A DNA stretch of 64,000 nucleotides from Epiperipatus broadwayi. Lineage: Eukaryota; Animalia; Onychophora. The stretch covers positions 5,332,001 to 5,396,000 of the forward strand of contig JAQFVV010000005.1 in the NCBI GenBank assembly GCA_028023455.1. Reading direction: 5' to 3'. Of this stretch, positions 4,397 to 57,089 are shown piece after piece; the stretch's first letter is position 1, and each line of letters opens with the position of its first letter. The notes below the pieces were generated by a model. That model made no database searches. It was not told where the DNA came from and saw nothing but the letters and a program-made list of their open reading frames with translations. Both the position numbers and the translations under genes were made by a program.

Positions 4397-4813
4397 ATAA
4401 TGAAAGATACAACATCTAGTTTTACCTACTACATTTTACAATTTAATAAAATGATCAAGAAATTAAAAAAAATAGTTAATGAGTTGTGCTTTAGTAAATC
4501 ATATGCATTTCTGAAAAAGTATAAAAAATATGCCAAGTGCAAATTTTTCCCTTACAAAATGTTATCGACTTAAAATAATTATACCCAGGTCATTATTACA
4601 CAGATTTTAAAATATTTTTATATGTTAATTTCAATTGTACCATGTTTTTGTTGTTATTATTGATATTTTGAATTACTATTTAAGTGGATACATCTGAGAA
4701 TTGGTTTCATGGAAACTTAAATTAATTGTTTACTTTTGGAATGTTTTTATCAAATATATTTTATTGTGCAGTAGTTGTCGTTTTTATCCTTTTATTTCTC
4801 AATGCATTGTCAA

Positions 4814-4894
4814 GCATTGGTGGTCGAGAGGTCAGCGACAGCTGCTTTACAAGCAGTTGTTCCGGGTTAACGGGTTCGCTTCCCGGCTGATACT
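4814..4894 (+). tRNA. tRNA-Val(TAC)-like cloverleaf (pseudogene or SINE head) with an 8-nt insertion in the T arm
   Basis: Acceptor GCATTGG/CTGATAC (1 mismatch). D stem GTCG/CGAC. Anticodon arm GCTGC-TTTACAA-GCAGT (TAC at 4848-4850). T arm CCGGG-[TTAACGGG]-TTCGCTT-CCCGG. Confidence 0.65.
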
Positions 4895-4903
4895 ATGACA
4901 CAT

Positions 4904-11269: not shown

Positions 11270-11890
11270 TACATATAACCTTTTCGGGTCCACTTACCCG
11301 ATGTGATTACAAAGCATCTAATGTACAAAAAAAAAACCCAAGACAATTATAATCTTGTTTACAAAAGAACACATTCCAGACAACAATCATGTCCACAAAA
11401 GGGTTACTATAATCTTGCATAATGTGTATCTGTACATGGCCCAGCCACTGAGAAGTTATCCATATCCCAATGATCCCACCCCAGGGCCCCGGGCTGAAAA
11501 ATTAAGCTTCAACTGAATAGGAGGACAAGTCCAGCATTGTTCCAACCACACAATAGATGAGGTCCAAGAACCAAGTCCACAAGACCCCGACCCACAGCCA
11601 AGCCATGCAAAGACCATTCTGGATACCTCTGTCTCCCAATTTAACAGTACAAATGTGCCAGGACCAAAACCAACAAGGGAAAGCTAACAAATGAAGCACA
11701 GATCTGCACTGCTCAAAACCAACCCATCAAGGAGGCACAGCAGCCCATCAGAGAGGAAAAGGTCACAGCAACTTTGACCAGGTACCATCCCAGCAGGTTT
11801 TCAGGTAGCAGCAACAATTGCCAACAGCCCGCACCATAATCCAGACCCCTAATGACCACCACCAGCCACCCCTAAGGAAGAAAGGATGAG
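11270..11890. other. GC-rich island, probable interspersed-repeat remnant of unknown class
   Basis: Sharp GC increase. Interrupted Pro/Gln-rich frame on plus. Hairpin tcgggt-ccactt-acccga near 11284. Confidence 0.4.
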
Positions 11891-12206
11891 TGCAGATTTA
11901 TGCCCATAATTTCAATGGAAAATGTGTTTCCTGGATCAATTAAAAAAAAAAAAAAATTGAATTCAGCCAAATTATGAATAAAAACAATGACTACATCTTG
12001 TTTTTCTGAAGGTTTGTGATGATAGTGTTTTAGCTGTATTTTTATATTGGACTATTTCCATCATCTAATATGTGTGTTGAATATCTTTAGAAAAGTTTAA
12101 TTTTATTTAAATATTCCAAATGCATTCAACTGTTAGTAATATAACAGCAAATAGGTTAGTATATGCACCAACTGTTAGTAATATCACATCAAACAGCTTA
12201 GTATAT

Positions 12207-12254
12207 GCACAATGTTTTGAGAGGTATTTTTCTCCCCTCTTCTTCAGGTGTTGC
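12207..12254 (-). ncRNA. Type I hammerhead motif, family 2, left arm
   Basis: caacac CTGAAGA A GAGG GGAGAAAAATA CCTC TC AAAAC ATT gtg. 5' core intact; 3' core shows CpG-type decay. Confidence 0.6.
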
Positions 12255-12414
12255 TGGCCTGACCAGTGACAGCACTAGCATGGGATTTGAACCTGGCTCT
12301 TTAGATTCTTGATTATTGAAATTTTAAGGTTAGAGTGTTACCTTAAAATTCAATAATCGCAAATCTAAGGACCCAGGTTCGAATCCCATGCTAGTACTGT
12401 CACTGGTCAGGCCA

Positions 12415-12461
12415 GCAACACCCAAAGAAGAGGGGAGAAAAATACCCTTGAAACGTTGTGC
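12415..12461 (+). ncRNA. Type I hammerhead motif, family 2, right arm
   Basis: caacac CCAAAGA A GAGGG GAGAAAAATA CCCTT GAAAC GTT gtg. 3' core intact; 5' core has 2 changes. Confidence 0.6.
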
Positions 12462-12608
12462 ATATACTAACCTGTTTGCTGTGATATTACTAACAGTTAG
12501 TGCATATACTAACCTGTTTGCTGTGATATTACTAACAGTTGTTTGCTGTGATATTACTAACAGTTGGTGCATATACTAACCTGTTTGTTGTGTTATTACT
12601 AACAGTTG
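12459..12608 (+). repeat. ~42-bp tandem units forming the 3' tail of the family-2 element
   Basis: tgcatatactaacctgtttgctgtgatattactaacagtt(a/g)g x3 plus a half unit. Two inverted units lie in the left arm. Confidence 0.9.
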
Positions 12609-12773
12609 GAATGCATTTGAATATTTAAATAAAATTAAACTTTTCTAAAGACATTCAACACAATATAAAAATACAGCAATGACTACATCTTCTCTTAAAT
12701 TGAAAATATACCAAATAATTTATCCATTTGAAAATACCGCCAATTTATAATAACAATTTAGATTAATTAAGCA

Positions 12774-12968
12774 GCTGAAGTGAAGTTTTTTTCTTTTCAG
12801 TTAAAGTAATAAAATAAGGCTAAGCATTTTCGAGAGTTACCAATACTCTCATATTCATAGCTGGGGTAAAGTAATAAAATAAACTTGATTGCTTTACTAT
12901 TGTAACTCTCAAAGTGCTCAGCCTTATTTTATTACTTTAACTGAAAAGAAAAAAAACTTATCTTCAAC
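12774..12968. mobile_element. Short fold-back with a family-5 hammerhead-like motif at its inner end
   Basis: Arms ~12774-12843 and ~12897-12968. Minus 12818-12861 reads GCT ATGAATA T GAGAGT ATTGGTA ACTCTC GAAA ATG CTT AGCC. The right arm restarts in the helix II loop (..actctc aaagtgctc agcc). Confidence 0.65.
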
Positions 12969-13048
12969 TTCTTATTAGTGCATAATTTAATCTATTACTT
13001 TCATTGAAGCAAAGTATACACCTCATATCTTTAATCATTACTTTAGTG

Positions 13049-18480: not shown

Positions 18481-18525
18481 CACAGGACCAGTTTCAGGGA
18501 AACCACCTTCATCAGCTAACTGTGC
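18481..18525 (-). ncRNA. Type I hammerhead ribozyme motif, family 4, core intact
   Basis: Minus strand: cacag ttag CTGATGA AGG TGGTTTC CCT GAAA C TG GTC CTGTG. Predicted cleavage after position 18486. Confidence 0.8.
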
Positions 18526-18930: not shown

Positions 18931-21900
18931 TTCATTTATACCATCTAAAAATCCAATGTTATTTAAAATACAAACCAATTTATATGTAGCCACTAACTTC
19001 AAATGTTATAATAGTATATATTAAATTATCTTTCCAAAGGCAGATGGTAATAACTGGCTAATAGGATCCTATGCTTAAGTATCAACAGTTAATCAATAAC
19101 AGTAGTAGTTTGCCATTGGTTCACACCTTTTAATACAATTTATTTTAGCAACTCAATATTAGAATTATATCATAAATTTTAATAAACTTTTTATATCATT
19201 AAGATAGTGTAAAACAATTGATAATATTTTTATATAATTTTCCAATATGAAAAAATCACTGTTACATTATATTTTTGAATTACTATTGCAGAATATCATT
19301 CAACTCATCTTAATTACTAAAACAATCTTTAAATTATTGTATATATGTTTAAAAAGCTTAATTATTATCAAATTATTAAATACATTTTTGAATAACTCTC
19401 TTACATAATTATTTGAAAATAAAAAAACTAATAGTTAAAAAAAATATCCAAAAAGTATATAAGTTTAGTAACAAAAGTAAATATATATAAAAAATATAAT
19501 TTTAAAAGTTATTAACAACAATTAAAGGGGGGAAAAACAAACATTGAAAAGCGCCAAGTGATTACTACTAATAAAGGATGTAAATTTCCTATAGAAATTC
19601 CCTTAGGAAATCCAGAAAATTTTACCGACTAGATTTTCCACAAGAAATTTCTGTAGGATGCTGAAATATATATATAAAAATAGAGAAAAATTACGAGACA
19701 GGTAACATTAATAAAAATAACAGACACAATATATATATATACTCATACAAGCACAAAGTCAGATGAAATGGGTGATAATAAGGCGTTGAGTTTCGCTGAA
19801 CTATGTATAAATACAAATAATAATCTATCATATGAGCAAATGGCAGATTTTATACCTATCCATATGTTTAAAGATAGATAGACACTTTACCTTAGAATTG
19901 CTTAGAAGTTCAAATGAAATTCAAACATGAGACTGGCCACCATCACCCTATCCTATTCACGTGAGCAAACATATTATTTATTTTACTATCTTAAGCACGA
20001 ATTAATTTGGAAACATTTAACTCTTTAATCACCATTCTCATGAATGAGCTGCCCATGTGATGGATTGAATACAGTACTGGTGTTTCTGCTCTCAAACTTT
20101 TTATGAACTACTGAGCAATAAAATCATTTGATAATGTTTATCAATGTGTTAAAACTCAAGAGCAACTCATATCTCTGTCATGATAAATATGAAATATTGT
20201 CAACTTTCGAATTAACCCTTTTATGGGTGGGTAGATATATTTTTGGGATCAAGAATTTGTGTATTATTATATAAAGTTCCACAAATATATTTAATAAAAT
20301 AAGTTAGAAATATTTATTAGCAACTTTTTTAAACTAAAAGACTAAACAAAACTGAATGTTTTAAGTAATGTTATTAATGATAATGTAACTTCCGGTAAAA
20401 TGTTTTGACTAGTTTCATCAAAGAATGACAACTAACAACATATGCAGCCAATGCAAGCCAGAGTAAATAATTGTATAGTTGTAGCTTTAGAATAGAAAGT
20501 CTCTTGACTATATTATTTTACAGAATATGTTGTAAAACACAAAATGCACCTAATAAGCAGAACATTTTAAAACTTATTTAAAGACATAATTGTTTACAAA
20601 AATCTGTTCCTATTAAAATCTGTTCTTCCTCATAAAAATATATATTATTAAGAAACTGCAAGTAGAATTTTGGGGGAAGATTCTACAAAAAGAGATTTTT
20701 TCCCCCCATCACTGTATACATAGAAAAATTACATAGGCGATAACATGCACACACACTGCAGAATTTTTATAATAGTGACCACTATTATAAAAATATATAA
20801 TGTATAAGTCAACAAAAAGGAATCATTACAGTGTAAAGTAAACAATTAGGCAAAAAAAAATACATTTGTAAAAATTATAATATAGAAAGGTCTCCAGATA
20901 CATGTCATATCCGAAACTTTATGATACTTAAAATATTTAAATAGGAACAAATAATATGTTTTAAACATATATGCAATGTTTTAACATATTATTTTAATGC
21001 TTATACACATTAATACATTAAGTAAAAAAATTAACTACAAACAGAATAATATACAGTATGCATTTTAAAGACAAGTGTATATAGCAGATACTTTTAATAA
21101 TATATACATACCTTTGATACAAAGTATTTTAGATATTATGTGTAAATATTAAAATATCATCAAAAATAAAACATCCTGTTTCTTCATTTTACTTGTGGCA
21201 AAAACTGATGGTGATGAAATACAAAACAATAATTTCTAGGTGATTTTAAAATGCTTGTCTGTAATTATGAAGATATCCGCGCGCCATTTTCATGTGATGT
21301 GATATAGCAACTGCAGCAGTAAGCATTTGCAATGTGAATTAAAAAATTAAATTTTAAAAAATTAAACTATCATTTTTTGGTAATTTATATATTTTTAATT
21401 TAATAACATTTTTAAATTGTAAATAAATGAATCAACAGACTTTGAAACTGTGGATATGAGAGACAGGGATGTATGATCAATGATATTATTGATATTCTTA
21501 TTTGTATAAAATATTTAAGCCATTTAATTCTTTAAAAGATCACTGTTGGGACAGAGAAATTTGAGAAAGGGGTTAACAAGAAGGTTTTTTTTCTTCTAAA
21601 ATTAAACAGTATTTCATACACATATATAATAAAATTTTTATTGGCTGTTCAAAAATAAAAAATCACTTTACTAAATAAAAAAAATATCTAAGAAAAAAAA
21701 ATGATAAGCATTTATAAATATATAACTACGCGTTAATATTAAGTGCAACTAAAAACTGTATATTGTAAATAAATAGCTGGAAAAAAACAACAACGAAGAA
21801 ATAAAATTAAACTTTCCATATACATATTATACAAACATATTAACACTGATAGCATTTTCTAAAATTGAGATTTTGCTATAACCAGTCTGACTGGTACTTT

Positions 21901-22386: not shown

Positions 22387-23141
22387 TCTATGTAAATAAA
22401 AATGTAAATGTTCGTTTGTTCAGAATCTTAAATCTCCAAAAGTTCTTCACCGATTGCTTTGAAATTTTGACTCAACGTTGTGTTCGAATACGTGCATGTT
22501 TTTACCTACTACCTATTATTATATAGATGTCACACCTGTGACCGGTAAAAACATGATTTTTTTGAAAAACAGCGCTATCTGTTGGATGTAAAAGCAACAC
22601 ATGCTATACTAAATATTTTATGATTCCATTTCAAGGTTCCCGATTGCATTGTTAAATTGAATTTTCATAGATTTCAATTTATTTTCATGTTGATTTAATT
22701 ATTTCATGTGAGAGATTGCAATTCCCAATTCGATTGGCGTTTGCAATCACCATCAACAAAGCTCAGGGACAATCTTTAGAATTGTGCGGTTTAGATCTAG
22801 ACACGAATTGCTTCTCACGTGGACAATTAGATGTTGCATGTTCTAGAGTCTGCAAACCAGACAATCTCTATATCTGCACAGACAGTCAGTGCCATTCTTT
22901 AGAATTGTGCACTTTAGATCTAGATATAGATTGCTTCTCGCATGGACTATTATATGTTGCATGTTCTAGAGTCAGCAAACCAGACAATCTCTTATATTTG
23001 CACAGACAATGGAACAACAAAAAATACTGTATACCCACAAACACTGTGAAATTAAACATATTAGAAACATGCACTTTCTCTTTTCTTTCTTTTCCATTTA
23101 ACCAGACTGTGCCACAGCAATGCATGGTGGAGTACGGCTAG
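22387..23141 (+). mobile_element. Non-autonomous Helitron with both ends
   Basis: 5' A|TCTATGTAAATAAAAATGTAAATGTTCGTTTG. 3' gcca-cagcaatgca-tggt hairpin followed by CTAG|T. Inserted in an AT dinucleotide; internal helicase remnant. Confidence 0.9.
22716..23010 (+). pseudogene. PIF1-family (Helitron RepHel) helicase C-terminal fragment, internally duplicated
   Basis: [24 protein letters not shown]...CFS.GQL.VACSRV. The ~122-bp segment is repeated at 22770 and 22893. Confidence 0.9.
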
Positions 23142-23375: not shown

Positions 23376-23929
23376 CTATAATGGTGTTAATGCAAATTTG
23401 TGTGAAGATGCTACATAGACCATTTTCGAAAGAGAGAAAAGCAGGCCTCTCTTCTATTGATTGCAGTAGGGTCACCCACTATGTAGTAAGCCTCCCTGAC
23501 TTTGCATTTAATGTCATTTCTTTCAGAGCAGATAACACTGGCTGTGGTGGGTAGGAAGGCATGGCCAGTGGCTCTCTCATGCTCAACAAAAATTGAATTG
23601 CCTTCAAGCTTAGTTTTGGTCCTGTTGTAGAGTTATCTATGTTGAGCTACTCTGGTTGCAATGTTGGTTTCAGTTTCTCCATAATATGTTGCCACACAGT
23701 TTCTTTAGGACAGGTGATTTTGTAAACAACTTGAGGTGTGAGTTCAGGTTTAATCCTGTCTTTGGTGTTATTGACGAGTCTATTGGTGTTAGGAGGTGAG
23801 TGGAAAGTGACTGCAAAGTCACATGATAATTTGTTAATAAGACTTTTGGTTGTTGACTGGATGTATGGAATTAGGATTCTTGGTTCGTTTTCTATCTTAT
23901 CATTATGGTTTATTTTGTAAAAGAATTTA
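23376..23929 (-). pseudogene. Penelope-like GIY-YIG endonuclease domain
   Basis: Manual translation across one frameshift (~23700) and one stop gives the VY..Y.GET..R..H..E..I/N pattern. Confidence 0.85.
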
Positions 23930-24622
23930 TTAAATTTTCTGTTGATGGATGATTGTGTGTCCTATTTTTATTAAATCTGTGGTGCAATTAATGAGATTAA
24001 TTCTTTTATCTGTCTCATATTTGCACAGATTATGGTTTCTAAACATGAAGGAAGAGAGGTCTGCAAGTTTGTGAGATTCAGGCACATAAGAATTGGGATA
24101 TGTCAGACCTCGTAATTCTAAAGGTTTAACTATCATGCAATAGTCTAGTTTGTCTATGTTTCTGCTGACGCCTATGTCTAGGTATTTAAACTGACATGCT
24201 TGGTTTTCCCAAGTTATAGTAAAGATGAGCTTGGTGTTATTCTGAAGGCTGTTGTGGAGATTATTAATGATATCTTCTGGAGCTGCAATGAATATATCAT
24301 CAATGTAATGTGTGTAAATCATGTGTGGAGTTGACTGGAAGAAAACATGGAGTATTAGCTTTTCATGATGATTGAGCACAACACTTTTTAGTATACCACT
24401 TAGTGGGAGACCCATGGGCCAACCGTTGCGCATGTTGAACCATTTATCCCTGAAAATAGCAACAATGTTTAAATCGAGCCATTTTAAAAATTCAATGATA
24501 AATTTTGCCCATGTAGGTTGGCAGTTGCTTGCAATTAATGCATCATTGACTGTTTCAATTGATTGTTTGTAGTCAATGGAGTCGTATAGCTCAGTAACAT
24601 CAAATGATGCGATTTTGAACAT
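23930..24622 (-). pseudogene. Penelope-like reverse transcriptase core (230-aa open segment)
   Basis: ORF track 23930..24622. Frameshifts at both ends (~24625, and a CA-repeat slip near 23955). Confidence 0.9.
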
Positions 24623-27600
24623 CGGTTGTATGACCGCATTTGATTTTTTCTACAAAATCAAATCATGATTTGATGGTATTATCACCAAAGCCTCATGCGT
24701 TGATAAGCCAGCGATTAACCAAAACTGCCGTGTTGATAAAATAGATGTTTATAAGGGATTAATATATATCAGCAGGGGATATCAGTATCTAGAATCATGA
24801 GTTGCAGCAGACATGTGCATAGTGTAATCATTTCAAAACTCAACTTGTAGTTGTGGTATATTGGTGATTGATGTATTGCAGTTGAAAATATCAATTTTAT
24901 TTTTTGTATCTTCAATTGTACTGTGCATTTTGTTGAATTTGAGAACTGAATATTCCTAGATTGAAGTCCAATCTATAATTTTTGGTGATTAAATATCATA
25001 TACAATTCCTGAATAATTATCACATGATTACTATTAATTGATTTCAGACAATTAATTTTTCTTATTAAGAGTATTCAGAATAAAGAATTTGAATATCTAT
25101 AATTTGACGTATGATCTTTTTATTTATGTATATATATCTCCTAAAATTATTCTATTATTTTATTGTTTAAAAACAAAAAGTCTTCTTGATTTCTTCTCTT
25201 TGCTCTTTCTCTTATTTTCTCTTTTTTTTTCTATTTTACCTTATTATCATTAGTCTCTTAGGTTGTTCCACTGGCCCTTTCTGCACTAACTAAGACAATA
25301 GGATTGTATGTTTATGCAATCACATTCCATTCCTTAATTACAAACACAGCAATTCTGATTCTAATCTTTTATGTATTTTTTATATTTCTATTTTCTTTTT
25401 TATCCTGAAGTTAAAATGGCCCTACTTGTTCATAAGTCACTGTTAATAAGTGAACATAATTACAGATGTATAGTTAAAAGAATCCCTTTCCCTCCCAACT
25501 CCATTATCATATTCTCTCTTCATCAGTTTGATTTTTTGGAAATTATAGAGCTACTTATTTAATTTTTTTAATAATTTTTAATTATTTCTATAAATAAATA
25601 ACAACAAACATTATCCATCAAAAATCACAGGTTATCAATTGAAAAACCTCAAAGCAACTTCACAGCAGTAGAAAGAGGAAAATAATAATATGAAATCAGA
25701 AATGAATAAACTTCTATATACTAATTTAATATTTTGCAGATAATCTGAAAGTATATATATATTTTAAAAAATCATATTTTCTAATAATCTAAATGTGACA
25801 TTTTTTCAATTTATAACTAAACAAATATATATTTGTCAAAGCTAATCTTGATTGATTGGACAAATATAGGTATGCTGACCAGAAAATAAAAATACAATTA
25901 TAATATGATGGAAAAACTACCATGGATAAGACAGATGCCATATATTTATGTAAAATGAACTCGTAGTTATTCTTATTTTCTTTTGGCAATCAAAATCACT
26001 ATTGAATTACATTCAAGATATATAAAACTTTCTAAATTTACTAGTACAGTTTCATCAATTTTGATTTTCCTTTTCAATTTCTTTTTTTTTTTTTTTTCAA
26101 GCATTGGTATCCTTGTTTCAACCATGTTTATGTAAGTATAAAACATATATCTTTGCTTCCTCATGTAATATCTTTAATTTAAATAAAAACTATACCAAAT
26201 ACTGTAGCTTTTGCTAATTTCTATCATGAATATTTTCTTTCTATACATTCTTTCTAAAATTTCTATATTTACATAACTCAAATTTTTCATTTTTCAACAA
26301 TGCAATAAAAACTTATTTTATATACTTTTCCGAAATTATTGAACTTTTTTCAAAAAATAAAAAATGGTGACCAAGACCAGTTTCCCCCAAAGTTTAAATT
26401 AAGCAGTATATAAAAGAATCTTTTTCCTCCATTAAAAGCCAGCTAGCTATTAATATTATCATTTGGGATTCTTTTTTACTTATTATCCATTAATTATCAA
26501 TTTTTATTTTTTACAGTTGACATTATAATTTTATATTTTTGATACATTTATTTTCAATTAAATCTCTTTACAAGTATCAAGTTCATTAACTACCTACAAA
26601 CATTATCAGACCAGCAAAGCTGTTACAATCTGTCTCCTCTCTCCAATACTAATTCCATGTTAATCATACATTTATTTAATATTTCATATAATAAATATAA
26701 TAGTGATTCAGTAGTTGATAGTAATGATAAAAAAATTATTTGTCTTTTAAATTGTTAACTGATGGATTGCTTAATAAAAATAATCATTTGTGGGGAGAGT
26801 GGAGGATAAGTTTTATTCTCTTAAATAATTCTAAAGATTTGACAGAGAGTAAAAGTATATTCTATGTAATTGTTTTAAAATATATACAAGGAAGTGCAAA
26901 TTGTGAATTAATGAATAAATAAAATTAATAAAAGTTGTGTTACTAATCCTAAAATATTGTTCAGTGGTGCAGAAACTGCTTTTTATAAATTTAATCAAAA
27001 GAAGGATCAAAGAGATATTTTTGAATAATCACTTTGGATTTGAGAAATTTATTTTACTAGGAGTAATTGCCAATTGCCTTAGAATTCTGAATTAGATATA
27101 TGTGTGTATTGCAATGGTCAGGTTCAAACCCTTCTCGTTGCACGTTTTATTTTATCCACCAAACCTATCTGTGTTGGGTTCAAACCCTATTAAAATGAAT
27201 ATTTTAATAAATAAATGTATAAACCTTTCTATCATGGCTGGGTGTGCAGCATTATATATGCACATATGAATAAACGCTGTACATACATAGGCTAGTTGTT
27301 GTTACAGTGAATATAATGTTAAATCTTTTATTTATAAAATATAAAATTTAATGTTATAATTTTAAATAGTAGAAATGTCAATTTATTAAATTTAGTAAAT
27401 ATAAATTCGTATGTGGATGTATGATTCATCTTATATAATAATATATATAGAGTGGCATGATTTAGTTTTGTAAAAGAGCAAAAAGTTTTTAGTTAAATTA
27501 GTTAAAAATAGAAAGTTAGCCATAAACAGATTTGCATTTAAATCCACTGCACCTGGGATTAAATCAAAGTTAGAAAGTTGATAATTGCTTACTCAAATTT

Positions 27601-53296: not shown

Positions 53297-53590
53297 TAAA
53301 ACAGAGGCAAAACTTTCCATATAGTAGTTCCAACCAGTGCAAGCCAGAGCAATCAATAGATGCAAAAAGATTTGTGCATAAAATCCCTATCTAGTGCCTA
53401 CTCATCCAATATTCCCAGACTAGTTTCTAGCTTCTGGCTTTCATCAGTGAGGAGTCTTGCTACAAGCTAGAAATTAGTCTGAAGATATTGAATGAGTAGG
53501 CACTAGATAGGGATTTTATGCACAAATCTTCTTGCATCTATTGATTGCTTTGGGATGGCACTACTGTGTGGAGATTTTGCCTCTGTTTTA
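53297..53590. mobile_element. Family-1 fold-back insertion
   Basis: Arms taaaacagaggcaaaa...tctagctt and aagctagaa...ttttgcctctgtttta, head-to-head. Confidence 0.9.
53412..53454 (-). ncRNA. Type I hammerhead ribozyme motif, family 1, core intact
   Basis: Minus strand: ctcctca CTGATGA A AGC CAGAA GCT A GAAA C TA GTC tgggaa. Palindromic ACTAGT helix III; predicted cut after 53418. Confidence 0.8.
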
Positions 53591-56216: not shown

Positions 56217-57089
56217 CTAAAAACAAATATATGTATAAGTAAATATGTAACATTTGTACGAATGTATATATATATATTCATAATTAGTAAATATGACACG
56301 AATATTTGTAAATAAACTACTGTATAAGTGAATTTTAGTGTTTTCTATTATACCTGTAGGCTTTTAAGATCGTTAACCATTATTCAACATAAAATAAAAC
56401 CAATATTTCACATATATTCTATATCTACTTTATATTCATATATATATCAAAGTGAAAAATTCTAAAAAAAAGTTGTTTTATGAATATATATATAACTGAT
56501 CAAATCTTTCAGATTTATGATACACTAAGAAACTTGTAATAAATCTCTATAATGTATAGTACACATGCAAATATATAATTTTAATTTACAATTTTTTTTT
56601 GTTATTAATATTAAAAATTGAAAAATAATGATTGCTACTGTTTACACGTTAAAAATCAGTTTCAAGAATCCTACAAATAGAAAGTTAAAAAACAGCTATT
56701 TGTTTTTAAAATGACATTTCTTTAATTATTTTTAATATTATATTAATAATAAAGGTCTATAATTATAGACTATAAAAAAGTCATGTTTTACATAAACCGT
56801 TCCAATACTAAAATATTTTTTAAAAATTATAAAATAAAATTCAAATAAGTTTATTAAGTTCAAAGTTAAAAAGAATAACACATCTAATTTATTTTTTAAA
56901 AAAGGTTTTTTTTTTTTAATCTTCAGAATTCTGTAGTACTAGATGTAATGAAGGATTTTCTATTGATATATGTGTATAAATATACTTTTTTGTGTGTTCA
57001 TCCCTAAATATAATTGCTAGTTATTAGTATAATTTGGTTGGATCTCACCTGCAATCATTTTAATAAAGGAAGCTCAATCTGTTAGAAAT

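Follow-up and report, generated by a model that had tools for sequence, protein, structure and literature searches.

The window analysed here is a 64,000-nucleotide stretch of the genome of the onychophoran Epiperipatus broadwayi (assembly GCA_028023455.1, contig JAQFVV010000005.1, positions 5,332,001 to 5,396,000 of the forward strand; G+C content 26%), and all positions below are those of the window. At 11985-12691 it contains a near-palindrome of about 690 bp, which consists of two inverted, tail-out copies (arms) of a short repeat. From the centre outward, each arm runs through a B-box, a highly conserved 35-nt linker, a hammerhead-like core that begins 35 nt past the B-box, 42-nt tandem units and an AT-rich 3′ body. 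The left arm (12330-12035, minus strand) and the right arm (12328-12676, plus strand) are 90-93% identical, with 93% identity across 270 aligned positions. Between them there are 19 substitutions (13 of them transitions, 8 of CpG type) as well as three indels, namely 67 nt more of tandem units in the right arm, and a 25-nt insert and one additional T in the left arm. Alignment, BLAST and Tandem Repeats Finder (TRF) all confirmed the fold-back of the original prediction, in which each arm had been read as B-box, about 35 nt, core and 42-nt tandem tail. However, the structure is not symmetrical. Besides the unequal tandems and the left insert, the left side has 35 nt (12000-12034) between the direct repeat and the arm homology that are unmatched in the right arm. 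The 9-nt loop that had been placed at the centre was not found either. The arms abut and share a 3-nt overlap, GGT (12328-12330), and 12328-12341 (GGTTAGAGTGTTAC) is an extra 5′ stretch of the right arm that corresponds to the 3′ half of a tRNA D-arm.

The compound unit is bracketed by an exact 15-nt direct repeat (caatgactacatctt and CAATGACTACATCTT, 15 of 15 positions identical; Table 1). Among 19,464 random boundary pairs with the same spacing in the window, none reached an exact repeat of 15 nt, and the longest was 13 nt. This bears out the earlier claim of a single insertion with a 15-bp target-site duplication (TSD). In addition, self-BLAST detected no second copy of the family in the 64-kb window; weak matches, such as the one at 21799-21882, were rejected as AT-rich noise.

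Table 1. Features of the compound insertion in the window
Feature	Positions	Strand	Basis
TSD, left copy, 15 nt, CAATGACTACATCTT	11985-11999		exact repeat of 12677-12691; 416 family contigs diverge into random AT-rich flanks at 11999
One-sided 35-nt tail, the stretch from the long to the short terminus, AC-rich (17 A and 10 C of 35)	12000-12034	-	alignment, contig loose ends, composition
Left-arm 3′ body, including the 25-nt insert not in the right arm and a single sense-strand run of four T (12094-12091)	12035-12126	-	alignment, BLAST, T-run scan
Left-arm tandem, two 42-nt units	12127-12210	-	TRF, period 42, 2.0 copies, 90%
Left-arm probable minimal hammerhead relic; putative cut 12211/12210	12208-12250	-	sequence; helix II predicted by RNAfold
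Left-arm linker, B-box GGTTCAAATCC (12293-12283) and degenerate anticodon-side part of the tRNA-derived head	12251-12330	-	5′-truncated at about 12330
Right-arm tRNA-derived head from the 3′ half of the D-arm (GGTTAGAGTG), B-box GGTTCGAATCC (12376-12386) and linker	12328-12418	+	5′-truncated inside the D-arm
Right-arm probable minimal hammerhead relic; putative cut 12457/12458	12419-12460	+	sequence
Right-arm tandem, about 3.6 units of 42-nt period, one of them a 25-nt partial unit	12458-12608	+	TRF, repeat search
Right-arm 3′ body to the short terminus, with a run of four T at 12641-12644	12609-12676	+	alignment, T-run scan
TSD, right copy, 15 nt	12677-12691		exact repeat of 11985-11999

To characterize the family, contigs of four public runs were placed on 11800-12900 at 80% likeness. 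We found that the repeat belongs to a very high-copy, non-coding family. For instance, 67,524 contigs of a DNA run of the same organism fell on the element, and the summed word depth in this run was 3.5e5-6.7e6 inside 12000-12687 and 22-63 in the immediate flanks, with a peak at the 3′ end of the repeat. In run X1, the depth dropped from 4.9e5 to 63 past 12687. Furthermore, 31-mers of the family were present in runs of at least 10 differently coded organisms, including RNA libraries, where their presence is not proof of transcription. Exact-pattern scans for the family gave no match in metagenome contigs and none in viral contigs. The scan of genome contigs returned two 19-mers in bacterial metagenome-assembled genomes, which is about the number expected for 596 Gb, and they were judged to be chance matches. 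A protein-index search with the 80-aa antisense open reading frame (ORF) of the element gave no match.

The contigs of run X1 also defined the ends of the family. Loose ends into unrelated AT-rich flanks were found at 11999 (416 contigs) and at 12035 (497 contigs). Thus, copies of the family terminate at either of two 3′ positions separated by 35 nt. Of these, the left arm reaches the distal (long) terminus, and the right arm stops at the counterpart of the proximal (short) one, 12035. On each side, a terminus defined by the family adjoins the 15-mer. In the sense direction the arms finish with ..ATACAGC and ..CAGAAAAAC, and neither carries an A-tail.

The B-box is present in both arms (Table 1), and both arms are truncated within the head. 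Meanwhile, other copies of the family run past the centre as ..GATGGCTCAGCTGGTTAGAGCGTTACC.. / GATGGCTCAGCTGGTTAGAGCG, which corresponds to an A-box and a D-arm (agreement 0.95); loose ends of run X9 at 12345 and 12362 showed agreements of 0.95 and 0.73. The A-box/D-arm sequence TGGCTCAGCTGGTTAGAGC is not in this insertion and is present in the family contigs. Thus, the family is tRNA-headed, and the search for an A-box in other family members, which had been suggested as a check, was successful in the read contigs. In addition, in two single-locus contigs a short inverted 3′ fragment is joined directly to a sense copy that starts at ..GGCAGGATGGCTCA.., the presumed tRNA position 1. The family head is only tRNA-derived, with no cloverleaf predicted. 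In the linker, no variant of at least 10% was among those listed for 12247-12272.

Each arm has one run of four T on the sense strand, at 12091-12094 (56 nt upstream of the short terminus) and at 12641-12644 (32 nt upstream), and among the family variants listed none of at least 10% fell in these runs. The runs are potential RNA polymerase III (Pol III) terminators. A Pol III transcript that stopped there would be without both start sites of reverse transcription. Elsewhere in the window, at 4813-4895 (plus strand), there is an 83-nt tRNA-Val(TAC)-like sequence (ARAGORN; Rfam tRNA, 34.3 bits) directly followed by a (GA)n run, and it could represent the head of another tRNA-derived repeat.

The hammerhead-like core was compared with the minimal hammerhead ribozyme (min-HHR) of Penelope-like elements (PLEs) using our own implementation of the published descriptor (PMC4209133). 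The left arm reads CAC-CUGAAGA-A-GAGGGG...CCUCUC-AAA-ACAU-U/GUG and the right arm reads CAC-CCAAAGA-A-GAGGG...CCCUU-GAA-ACGU-U/GUG, where the slash marks the putative cut. In the left arm the first part of the core is intact, G12 is replaced by A (12218) and 16.2 is also A (12213). In the right arm U4 is replaced by C (12423) and G5 by A (12424), and 11.1 is U. The full core, CUGANGA ... GAA with A15.1, U16.1 and H17, is therefore carried by neither arm, and only a minority family variant is complete. Accordingly, the earlier observation that the arms had lost complementary halves of the core was verified, since the left arm has CTGAAGA but CAAAAC-ATT, and the right arm GAAAC-GTT but CCAAAGA. 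An unpaired A stands between 9 and 10.1 in both arms (12429 and 12240). Helix II, as predicted by RNAfold, has 6 bp in the left arm (GAGGGG/CCUCUC) and 5 bp in the right arm (GAGGG/CCCUU) with a G-U pair at its base. The 15.2-16.2 region is ACGU in the right arm, which is palindromic, and ACAU in the left arm. The unpaired nucleotide between 9 and 10.1, the G10.1-C11.1 pair, a helix II of 5-6 bp and the CG at 15.2-16.2 all occur together in the composite of the two arms and in the minority family variant.

The strict descriptor found no site in the window, where 0.025 are expected by chance per 64 kb. The left arm is one transition away from the descriptor (0.17 such sites expected per 64 kb) and the right arm two transitions, and among the family variants only that with G12 and ACGU passes. 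The motif is recognizable as a hammerhead with the published min-HHR descriptor alone; the Rfam hammerhead models gave no match at the locus or in the whole window even at E ≤ 10. The Rfam matches that did occur at the locus are microRNA-hairpin artefacts caused by the palindrome. Another near-match, at 56885-56935 on the minus strand (CTGAAGA...GAAA; hit at 56926), was a low-complexity false positive with a helix II of A and T runs. Furthermore, a candidate intact hammerhead lies at 18481-18525 (minus strand), with CTGATGA, GAAAC and GTC present and contiguous helices II and I of 3 bp each. This candidate fails the strict min-HHR descriptor and has no Rfam match.

Variation among the family copies was informative for the core. 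G12 made up 28-46% of the depth at 12218 (28% in the DNA run) and is a minority state, the depth-majority of copies having A there, while G16.2 made up 21-60% at 12213. Other variation fell at right-arm positions 12423, 12424 and 12449, together with a T insertion behind 12446. At the right-arm CUGAAGA site, RNA run X9 had C in 73% and G in 94% of the depth. Thus, a population with CCGAAGA (C4) exists. Meanwhile, the left arm, which bears TG, had about 10 times the contig depth through the core, and the variants listed at 12245/12246 include none of at least 10%. From this we infer that CUGAAGA is the majority state of the family despite the CCGAAGA population, although the inference rests on an incomplete variant table. 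The complete consensus of the original prediction therefore holds for CTGAAGA, by inference from the reads, but its letters had been picked at three CpG-type sites, and one of its states, G12, is in the minority. Judged from the sequence, neither arm encodes a working ribozyme, nor does the majority of copies by depth. In addition, both arms span the putative cut, so the templates would have been uncleaved. We consider it probable that the motif is a relic of a PLE-type hammerhead that took no part in this insertion.

The window also holds a decayed Penelope-like reverse transcriptase/endonuclease (RT/EN) remnant, 11 kb away at 23414-24649 on the minus strand (RVT_1, E=1.2e-7), so PLEs are present in this genome. 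The Atlas clusters nearest to it carry HTH_animal and GIY-YIG. Pfam searches found no GIY-YIG in the decayed downstream ORFs of the remnant, nor in its two top library relatives. The remnant was rejected as the partner of the family, because its 3′ untranslated region (UTR) is without the family module and its relatives are only 34% identical. A C-terminal fragment of a Helitron/PIF1-like helicase abuts the 3′ side of the remnant on the opposite strand (22671-23138, plus strand).

PLE insertions are 5′-truncated, often with an inverted 5′-truncated copy at the 5′ end, and have a tail of 30-40 bp, often at one end only (Craig et al. 2021, PMC8557442). Furthermore, work with a purified PLE protein showed that it nicks both strands of the DNA and extends both of them; that reverse transcription begins inside an AC-rich region, at two neighbouring internal sites whose intervening stretch is the tail seen in genomes; and that the hammerhead need not cleave (Frangieh et al. 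2024, PMC11167929). At the present locus, the inverted 5′-truncated arms, the one-sided 35-nt tail (A or C at 27 of 35 positions), the two family-wide termini and the TSD match this published insertion signature (PMC8557442, PMC11167929), and the Penelope-type integration that had been suggested from the sequence is thus well supported. We therefore propose, with considerable confidence, that the locus is one Penelope-type retro-insertion of two head-to-head, 5′-truncated copies of a tRNA-headed repeat. The event is old, and the locus is an ordinary decayed copy.

According to this proposal, with which the strand geometry of the locus agrees, the endonuclease and reverse transcriptase of a PLE would have made staggered nicks, 15 nt apart, in AT-rich DNA, and each exposed 3′-OH would have primed cDNA synthesis on RNA of the abundant non-coding tRNA-headed family. 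The top-strand 3′-OH at 11999 would have used the distal start site, which would give the left arm with its 35-nt AC-rich tail. The bottom-strand 3′-OH at 12677 would have used the proximal start site, 35 nt further in, which would give the right arm without a tail. Both cDNAs would have stopped in the tRNA-derived head and been joined head to head through the GGT overlap, and the two copies of the 15-mer would remain as the TSD. The agent would thus be a PLE enzyme, and the templates two separate RNAs. The underlying repeat unit would consist of a tRNA-derived head (A-box/D-arm and B-box), the 35-nt linker, a PLE-type minimal hammerhead, the 42-nt units, the 3′ body and two alternative termini.

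Several results weigh against parts of this interpretation. The arms differ by 7%, which is compatible with copying from a single template that snapped back and then decayed, and the empty site was not seen. ARAGORN found no tRNA at the locus and rejected the composite head too, and Rfam found no tRNA at the locus either, at the gathering threshold or at E ≤ 10. For the hammerhead, the Rfam null, the minority state of G12 and the CCGAAGA population given above have to be counted. Moreover, helix I has just 3 bp, and the two motifs lie on opposite strands, so an active dimer cannot form within one transcript. For the partner, the 3′ UTR of the only PLE remnant in the window is without the family module; the library relatives of the remnant are at most 34% identical and no same-genome partner was found; and no coding PLE with the 3′ sequence of the family was retrieved.

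Other explanations of the insertion were considered. One target-primed cDNA could have folded back inside the tRNA head and been copied, in which case the arms were identical at birth and diverged afterwards. In favour of this, only about 12 nt or less separate the ends of the arms in the head, with a 3-nt microhomology, and statistically the arms could have diverged by 7% since the insertion while the 15-nt TSD stayed intact. However, the arms end at different family termini, only one of them has the tail, and they differ by indels of 67, 25 and 1 nt. The T indel and the states at G12 and 16.2 recur family-wide, which suggests two source RNAs, and two-strand priming is a demonstrated behaviour of PLEs (PMC11167929). 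We regard such a snap-back as improbable. It is still harder to see here a fold-back or miniature inverted-repeat transposable element (MITE) type DNA transposon with long terminal inverted repeats, moved by a transposase. A near-palindrome between direct repeats would fit it, and a MITE-like palindrome does lie close by at 12768-12974, but other copies of the family pass through the centre into the tRNA A-box without turning back, a 15-nt TSD exceeds those of transposases, and the one-sided tail, the two alternative termini and the unequal arms speak for something else; we give this explanation hardly any weight. A retrozyme moving through circular RNA was also unsupported. The copies are inverted, the sole direct tandem at the locus is the 42-nt sub-repeat and not a monomer, and there is neither a canonical type I hammerhead nor evidence of circles. 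The SINE/retrozyme hybrid of the original prediction (SINE, short interspersed nuclear element) hence keeps its tRNA-type head and loses its retrozyme part, to which the uncut templates add a further objection.

Two further questions concern the family rather than the insertion. The hammerhead might be accidental: an ancestral CCGAAGA...CGAAACG with three CpGs would have decayed by methylation to TG/CA, which gave CTGAAGA in some copies of an element that never had a ribozyme. All five core differences between the arms are of CpG type, at least 67% of the X9 depth must read C-G at the right-arm site, and the short helix I and missing Rfam match fit as well; the chance of a near-miss within one transition is about 0.15 across the window. 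Nevertheless, the TG-bearing left arm has about 10 times the depth with no listed variant of at least 10% at 12245/12246, and the motif has min-HHR features that are not obvious ones, namely the unpaired A after A9, G10.1-C11.1 and the palindromic ACGU (PMC4209133). The G+C-rich helix II of 5-6 bp is kept with and without the T insertion, the motif lies upstream of PLE-type termini, which is where PLEs have their own hammerhead, and a strict match is expected so rarely in 64 kb. Because of the descriptor fit and the roughly 10:1 depth bias, we treat pure CpG decay as an unlikely alternative to a relic of a PLE-type hammerhead. Another possibility is that there is no independent SINE, and the arms are 5′-truncated 3′ ends of a coding PLE whose 3′ region (pseudo-long terminal repeat, pLTR) has a tRNA-derived block just upstream of the hammerhead; the insertion mechanism would be unchanged. 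Since both arms are truncated in the head, the locus itself cannot tell a stand-alone unit from such an end. PLE insertions are typically heavily 5′-truncated, dispersed min-HHRs are mostly truncated PLEs (PMC4209133, PMC8557442), and DNA depth is highest at the 3′ end, as 5′ truncation predicts. However, the two single-locus contigs that begin at ..GGCAGGATGGCTCA.. after an inverted 3′ fragment fit a unit starting at the head, very high copy number is more usual in short non-autonomous units, and the PLE remnant in the window is without the module. We therefore lean, if slightly, to a stand-alone SINE-like unit that is not only the 3′ end of a coding PLE, and take the coding-PLE end to be a real, somewhat weaker contender. 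More tentatively, the family could be a genuine SINE of Pol III type with a tRNA head, which has a PLE and not a long interspersed nuclear element (LINE) as its partner. It would then be a high-copy parasite that took the hammerhead-plus-terminus module of a PLE, primes on both DNA strands and is common to at least 10 related species.

The present insertion resembles those of PLEs in its tail-out, inverted and 5′-truncated copies, the AC-rich tail of 35 nt at one end, two recurrent termini, the TSD, the AT-rich target, the hammerhead upstream of the terminus and the uncleaved template. It differs from them in that the inserted unit has no RT/EN ORF and has a tRNA-derived A-box/B-box head, and in that no partial direct tandem (pLTR) is found at this locus. 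The core shares with the PLE min-HHR (Cervera & de la Pena 2014, PMC4209133) the CUGANGA (left arm), the nucleotide left unpaired ahead of helix II, G10.1-C11.1, a long helix II, the lack of helix III, the palindromic 15.2-16.2 (right arm) and a short helix I. Moreover, motif pairs 100-700 bp apart on opposite strands are also known there (PMC4209133). Unlike in PLEs, both copies here are core-mutated, helix I is down to 3 bp and G12 is the minority state of the family.

The original prediction had drawn a parallel with the Sm-alpha repeat of Schistosoma. As far as the account in PMC6765202 goes, Sm-alpha and Sj-alpha (Ferbeyre 1998; Laha 2000) are short non-coding repeats in which Pol III-type A and B boxes precede a hammerhead, whose cleavage would part the promoter from the 3′ portion, so the parallel holds for the layout. 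It does not extend to the ribozyme type. The hammerhead of Sm-alpha is described there as active and of the canonical type I, having helix III and loop-loop contacts, and the element as occurring in direct tandems, whereas the repeat here has a minimal PLE-type motif in dispersed fold-backs with PLE termini. The non-LTR retrozymes of metazoans (LTR, long terminal repeat; Cervera & de la Pena 2020, PMC7229834; Li et al. 2026, bioRxiv 10.64898/2026.07.22.740005) are likewise non-coding, hammerhead-bearing and AT-rich, with long TSDs and a proposed dependence on PLEs. However, they form direct tandem repeats of 170-400 nt with canonical type I hammerheads and are expressed as circles (PMC7229834), whereas our repeat has a minimal hammerhead and a tRNA head, no direct tandem and no evidence of circles. 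Finally, tRNA-derived SINEs (SINE2) and the non-autonomous LTR elements that bear small RNA genes (Kojima 2024, PMC10886601) also join an A/B-box tRNA-derived head to a 3′ module borrowed from an autonomous retroelement. In our case the 3′ module and the insertion signature are of PLE type and not of LINE or LTR type, and, in contrast to SINE2, there is no poly(A) or simple-repeat tail, and a run of four T lies internally, upstream of the terminus.

PLE-dependent non-coding hammerhead repeats have already been proposed (PMC8969392; bioRxiv 10.64898/2026.07.22.740005). In the literature searched for a tRNA-derived head combined with a PLE-type hammerhead/terminus module, we found no description. 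The nearest analogues would be Sm-alpha and Kojima's tRNA-bearing non-autonomous LTR elements (PMC10886601). The insertion geometry is already known, and the unusual part is the tRNA head on a Penelope-type tail.

The neighbourhood of the locus also contains other repeats. Upstream, another repeat ends near 11910 (11800-11910, DNA-run depth 960-4930), and it is followed by unique DNA and then by a run of 15 A (11942-11956) just upstream of the insertion site. Downstream, the locus is adjoined by the MITE-like palindrome of about 207 bp mentioned above, whose arms (12786-12830 and 12911-12955) are 96% complementary. This palindrome is moderately repeated, with a DNA-run depth of 900-1500 against 40-60 for unique DNA. 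It gave rise to an Rfam hairpin artefact, MIR5649, which recurs at 53384-53513.

SINEs are defined as parasites of LINEs, and to our knowledge there are no accepted tRNA-headed dependants of PLEs. If our interpretation is true, the joining of a tRNA head to a PLE hammerhead/terminus module, found here across tens of thousands of contigs, would bring the third class of retroelements within the SINE concept. The family would then be the first class of SINEs shown to depend on PLEs, and a natural link among Sm-alpha-type SINEs, retrozymes and PLEs. In addition, it may provide a large natural data set on PLE integration, for which the two start sites and the two-strand priming have so far rested on one in vitro study. 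The locus described here would be a clean and fully dissected case of a single event that made use of both the long and the short terminus but not of hammerhead cleavage.

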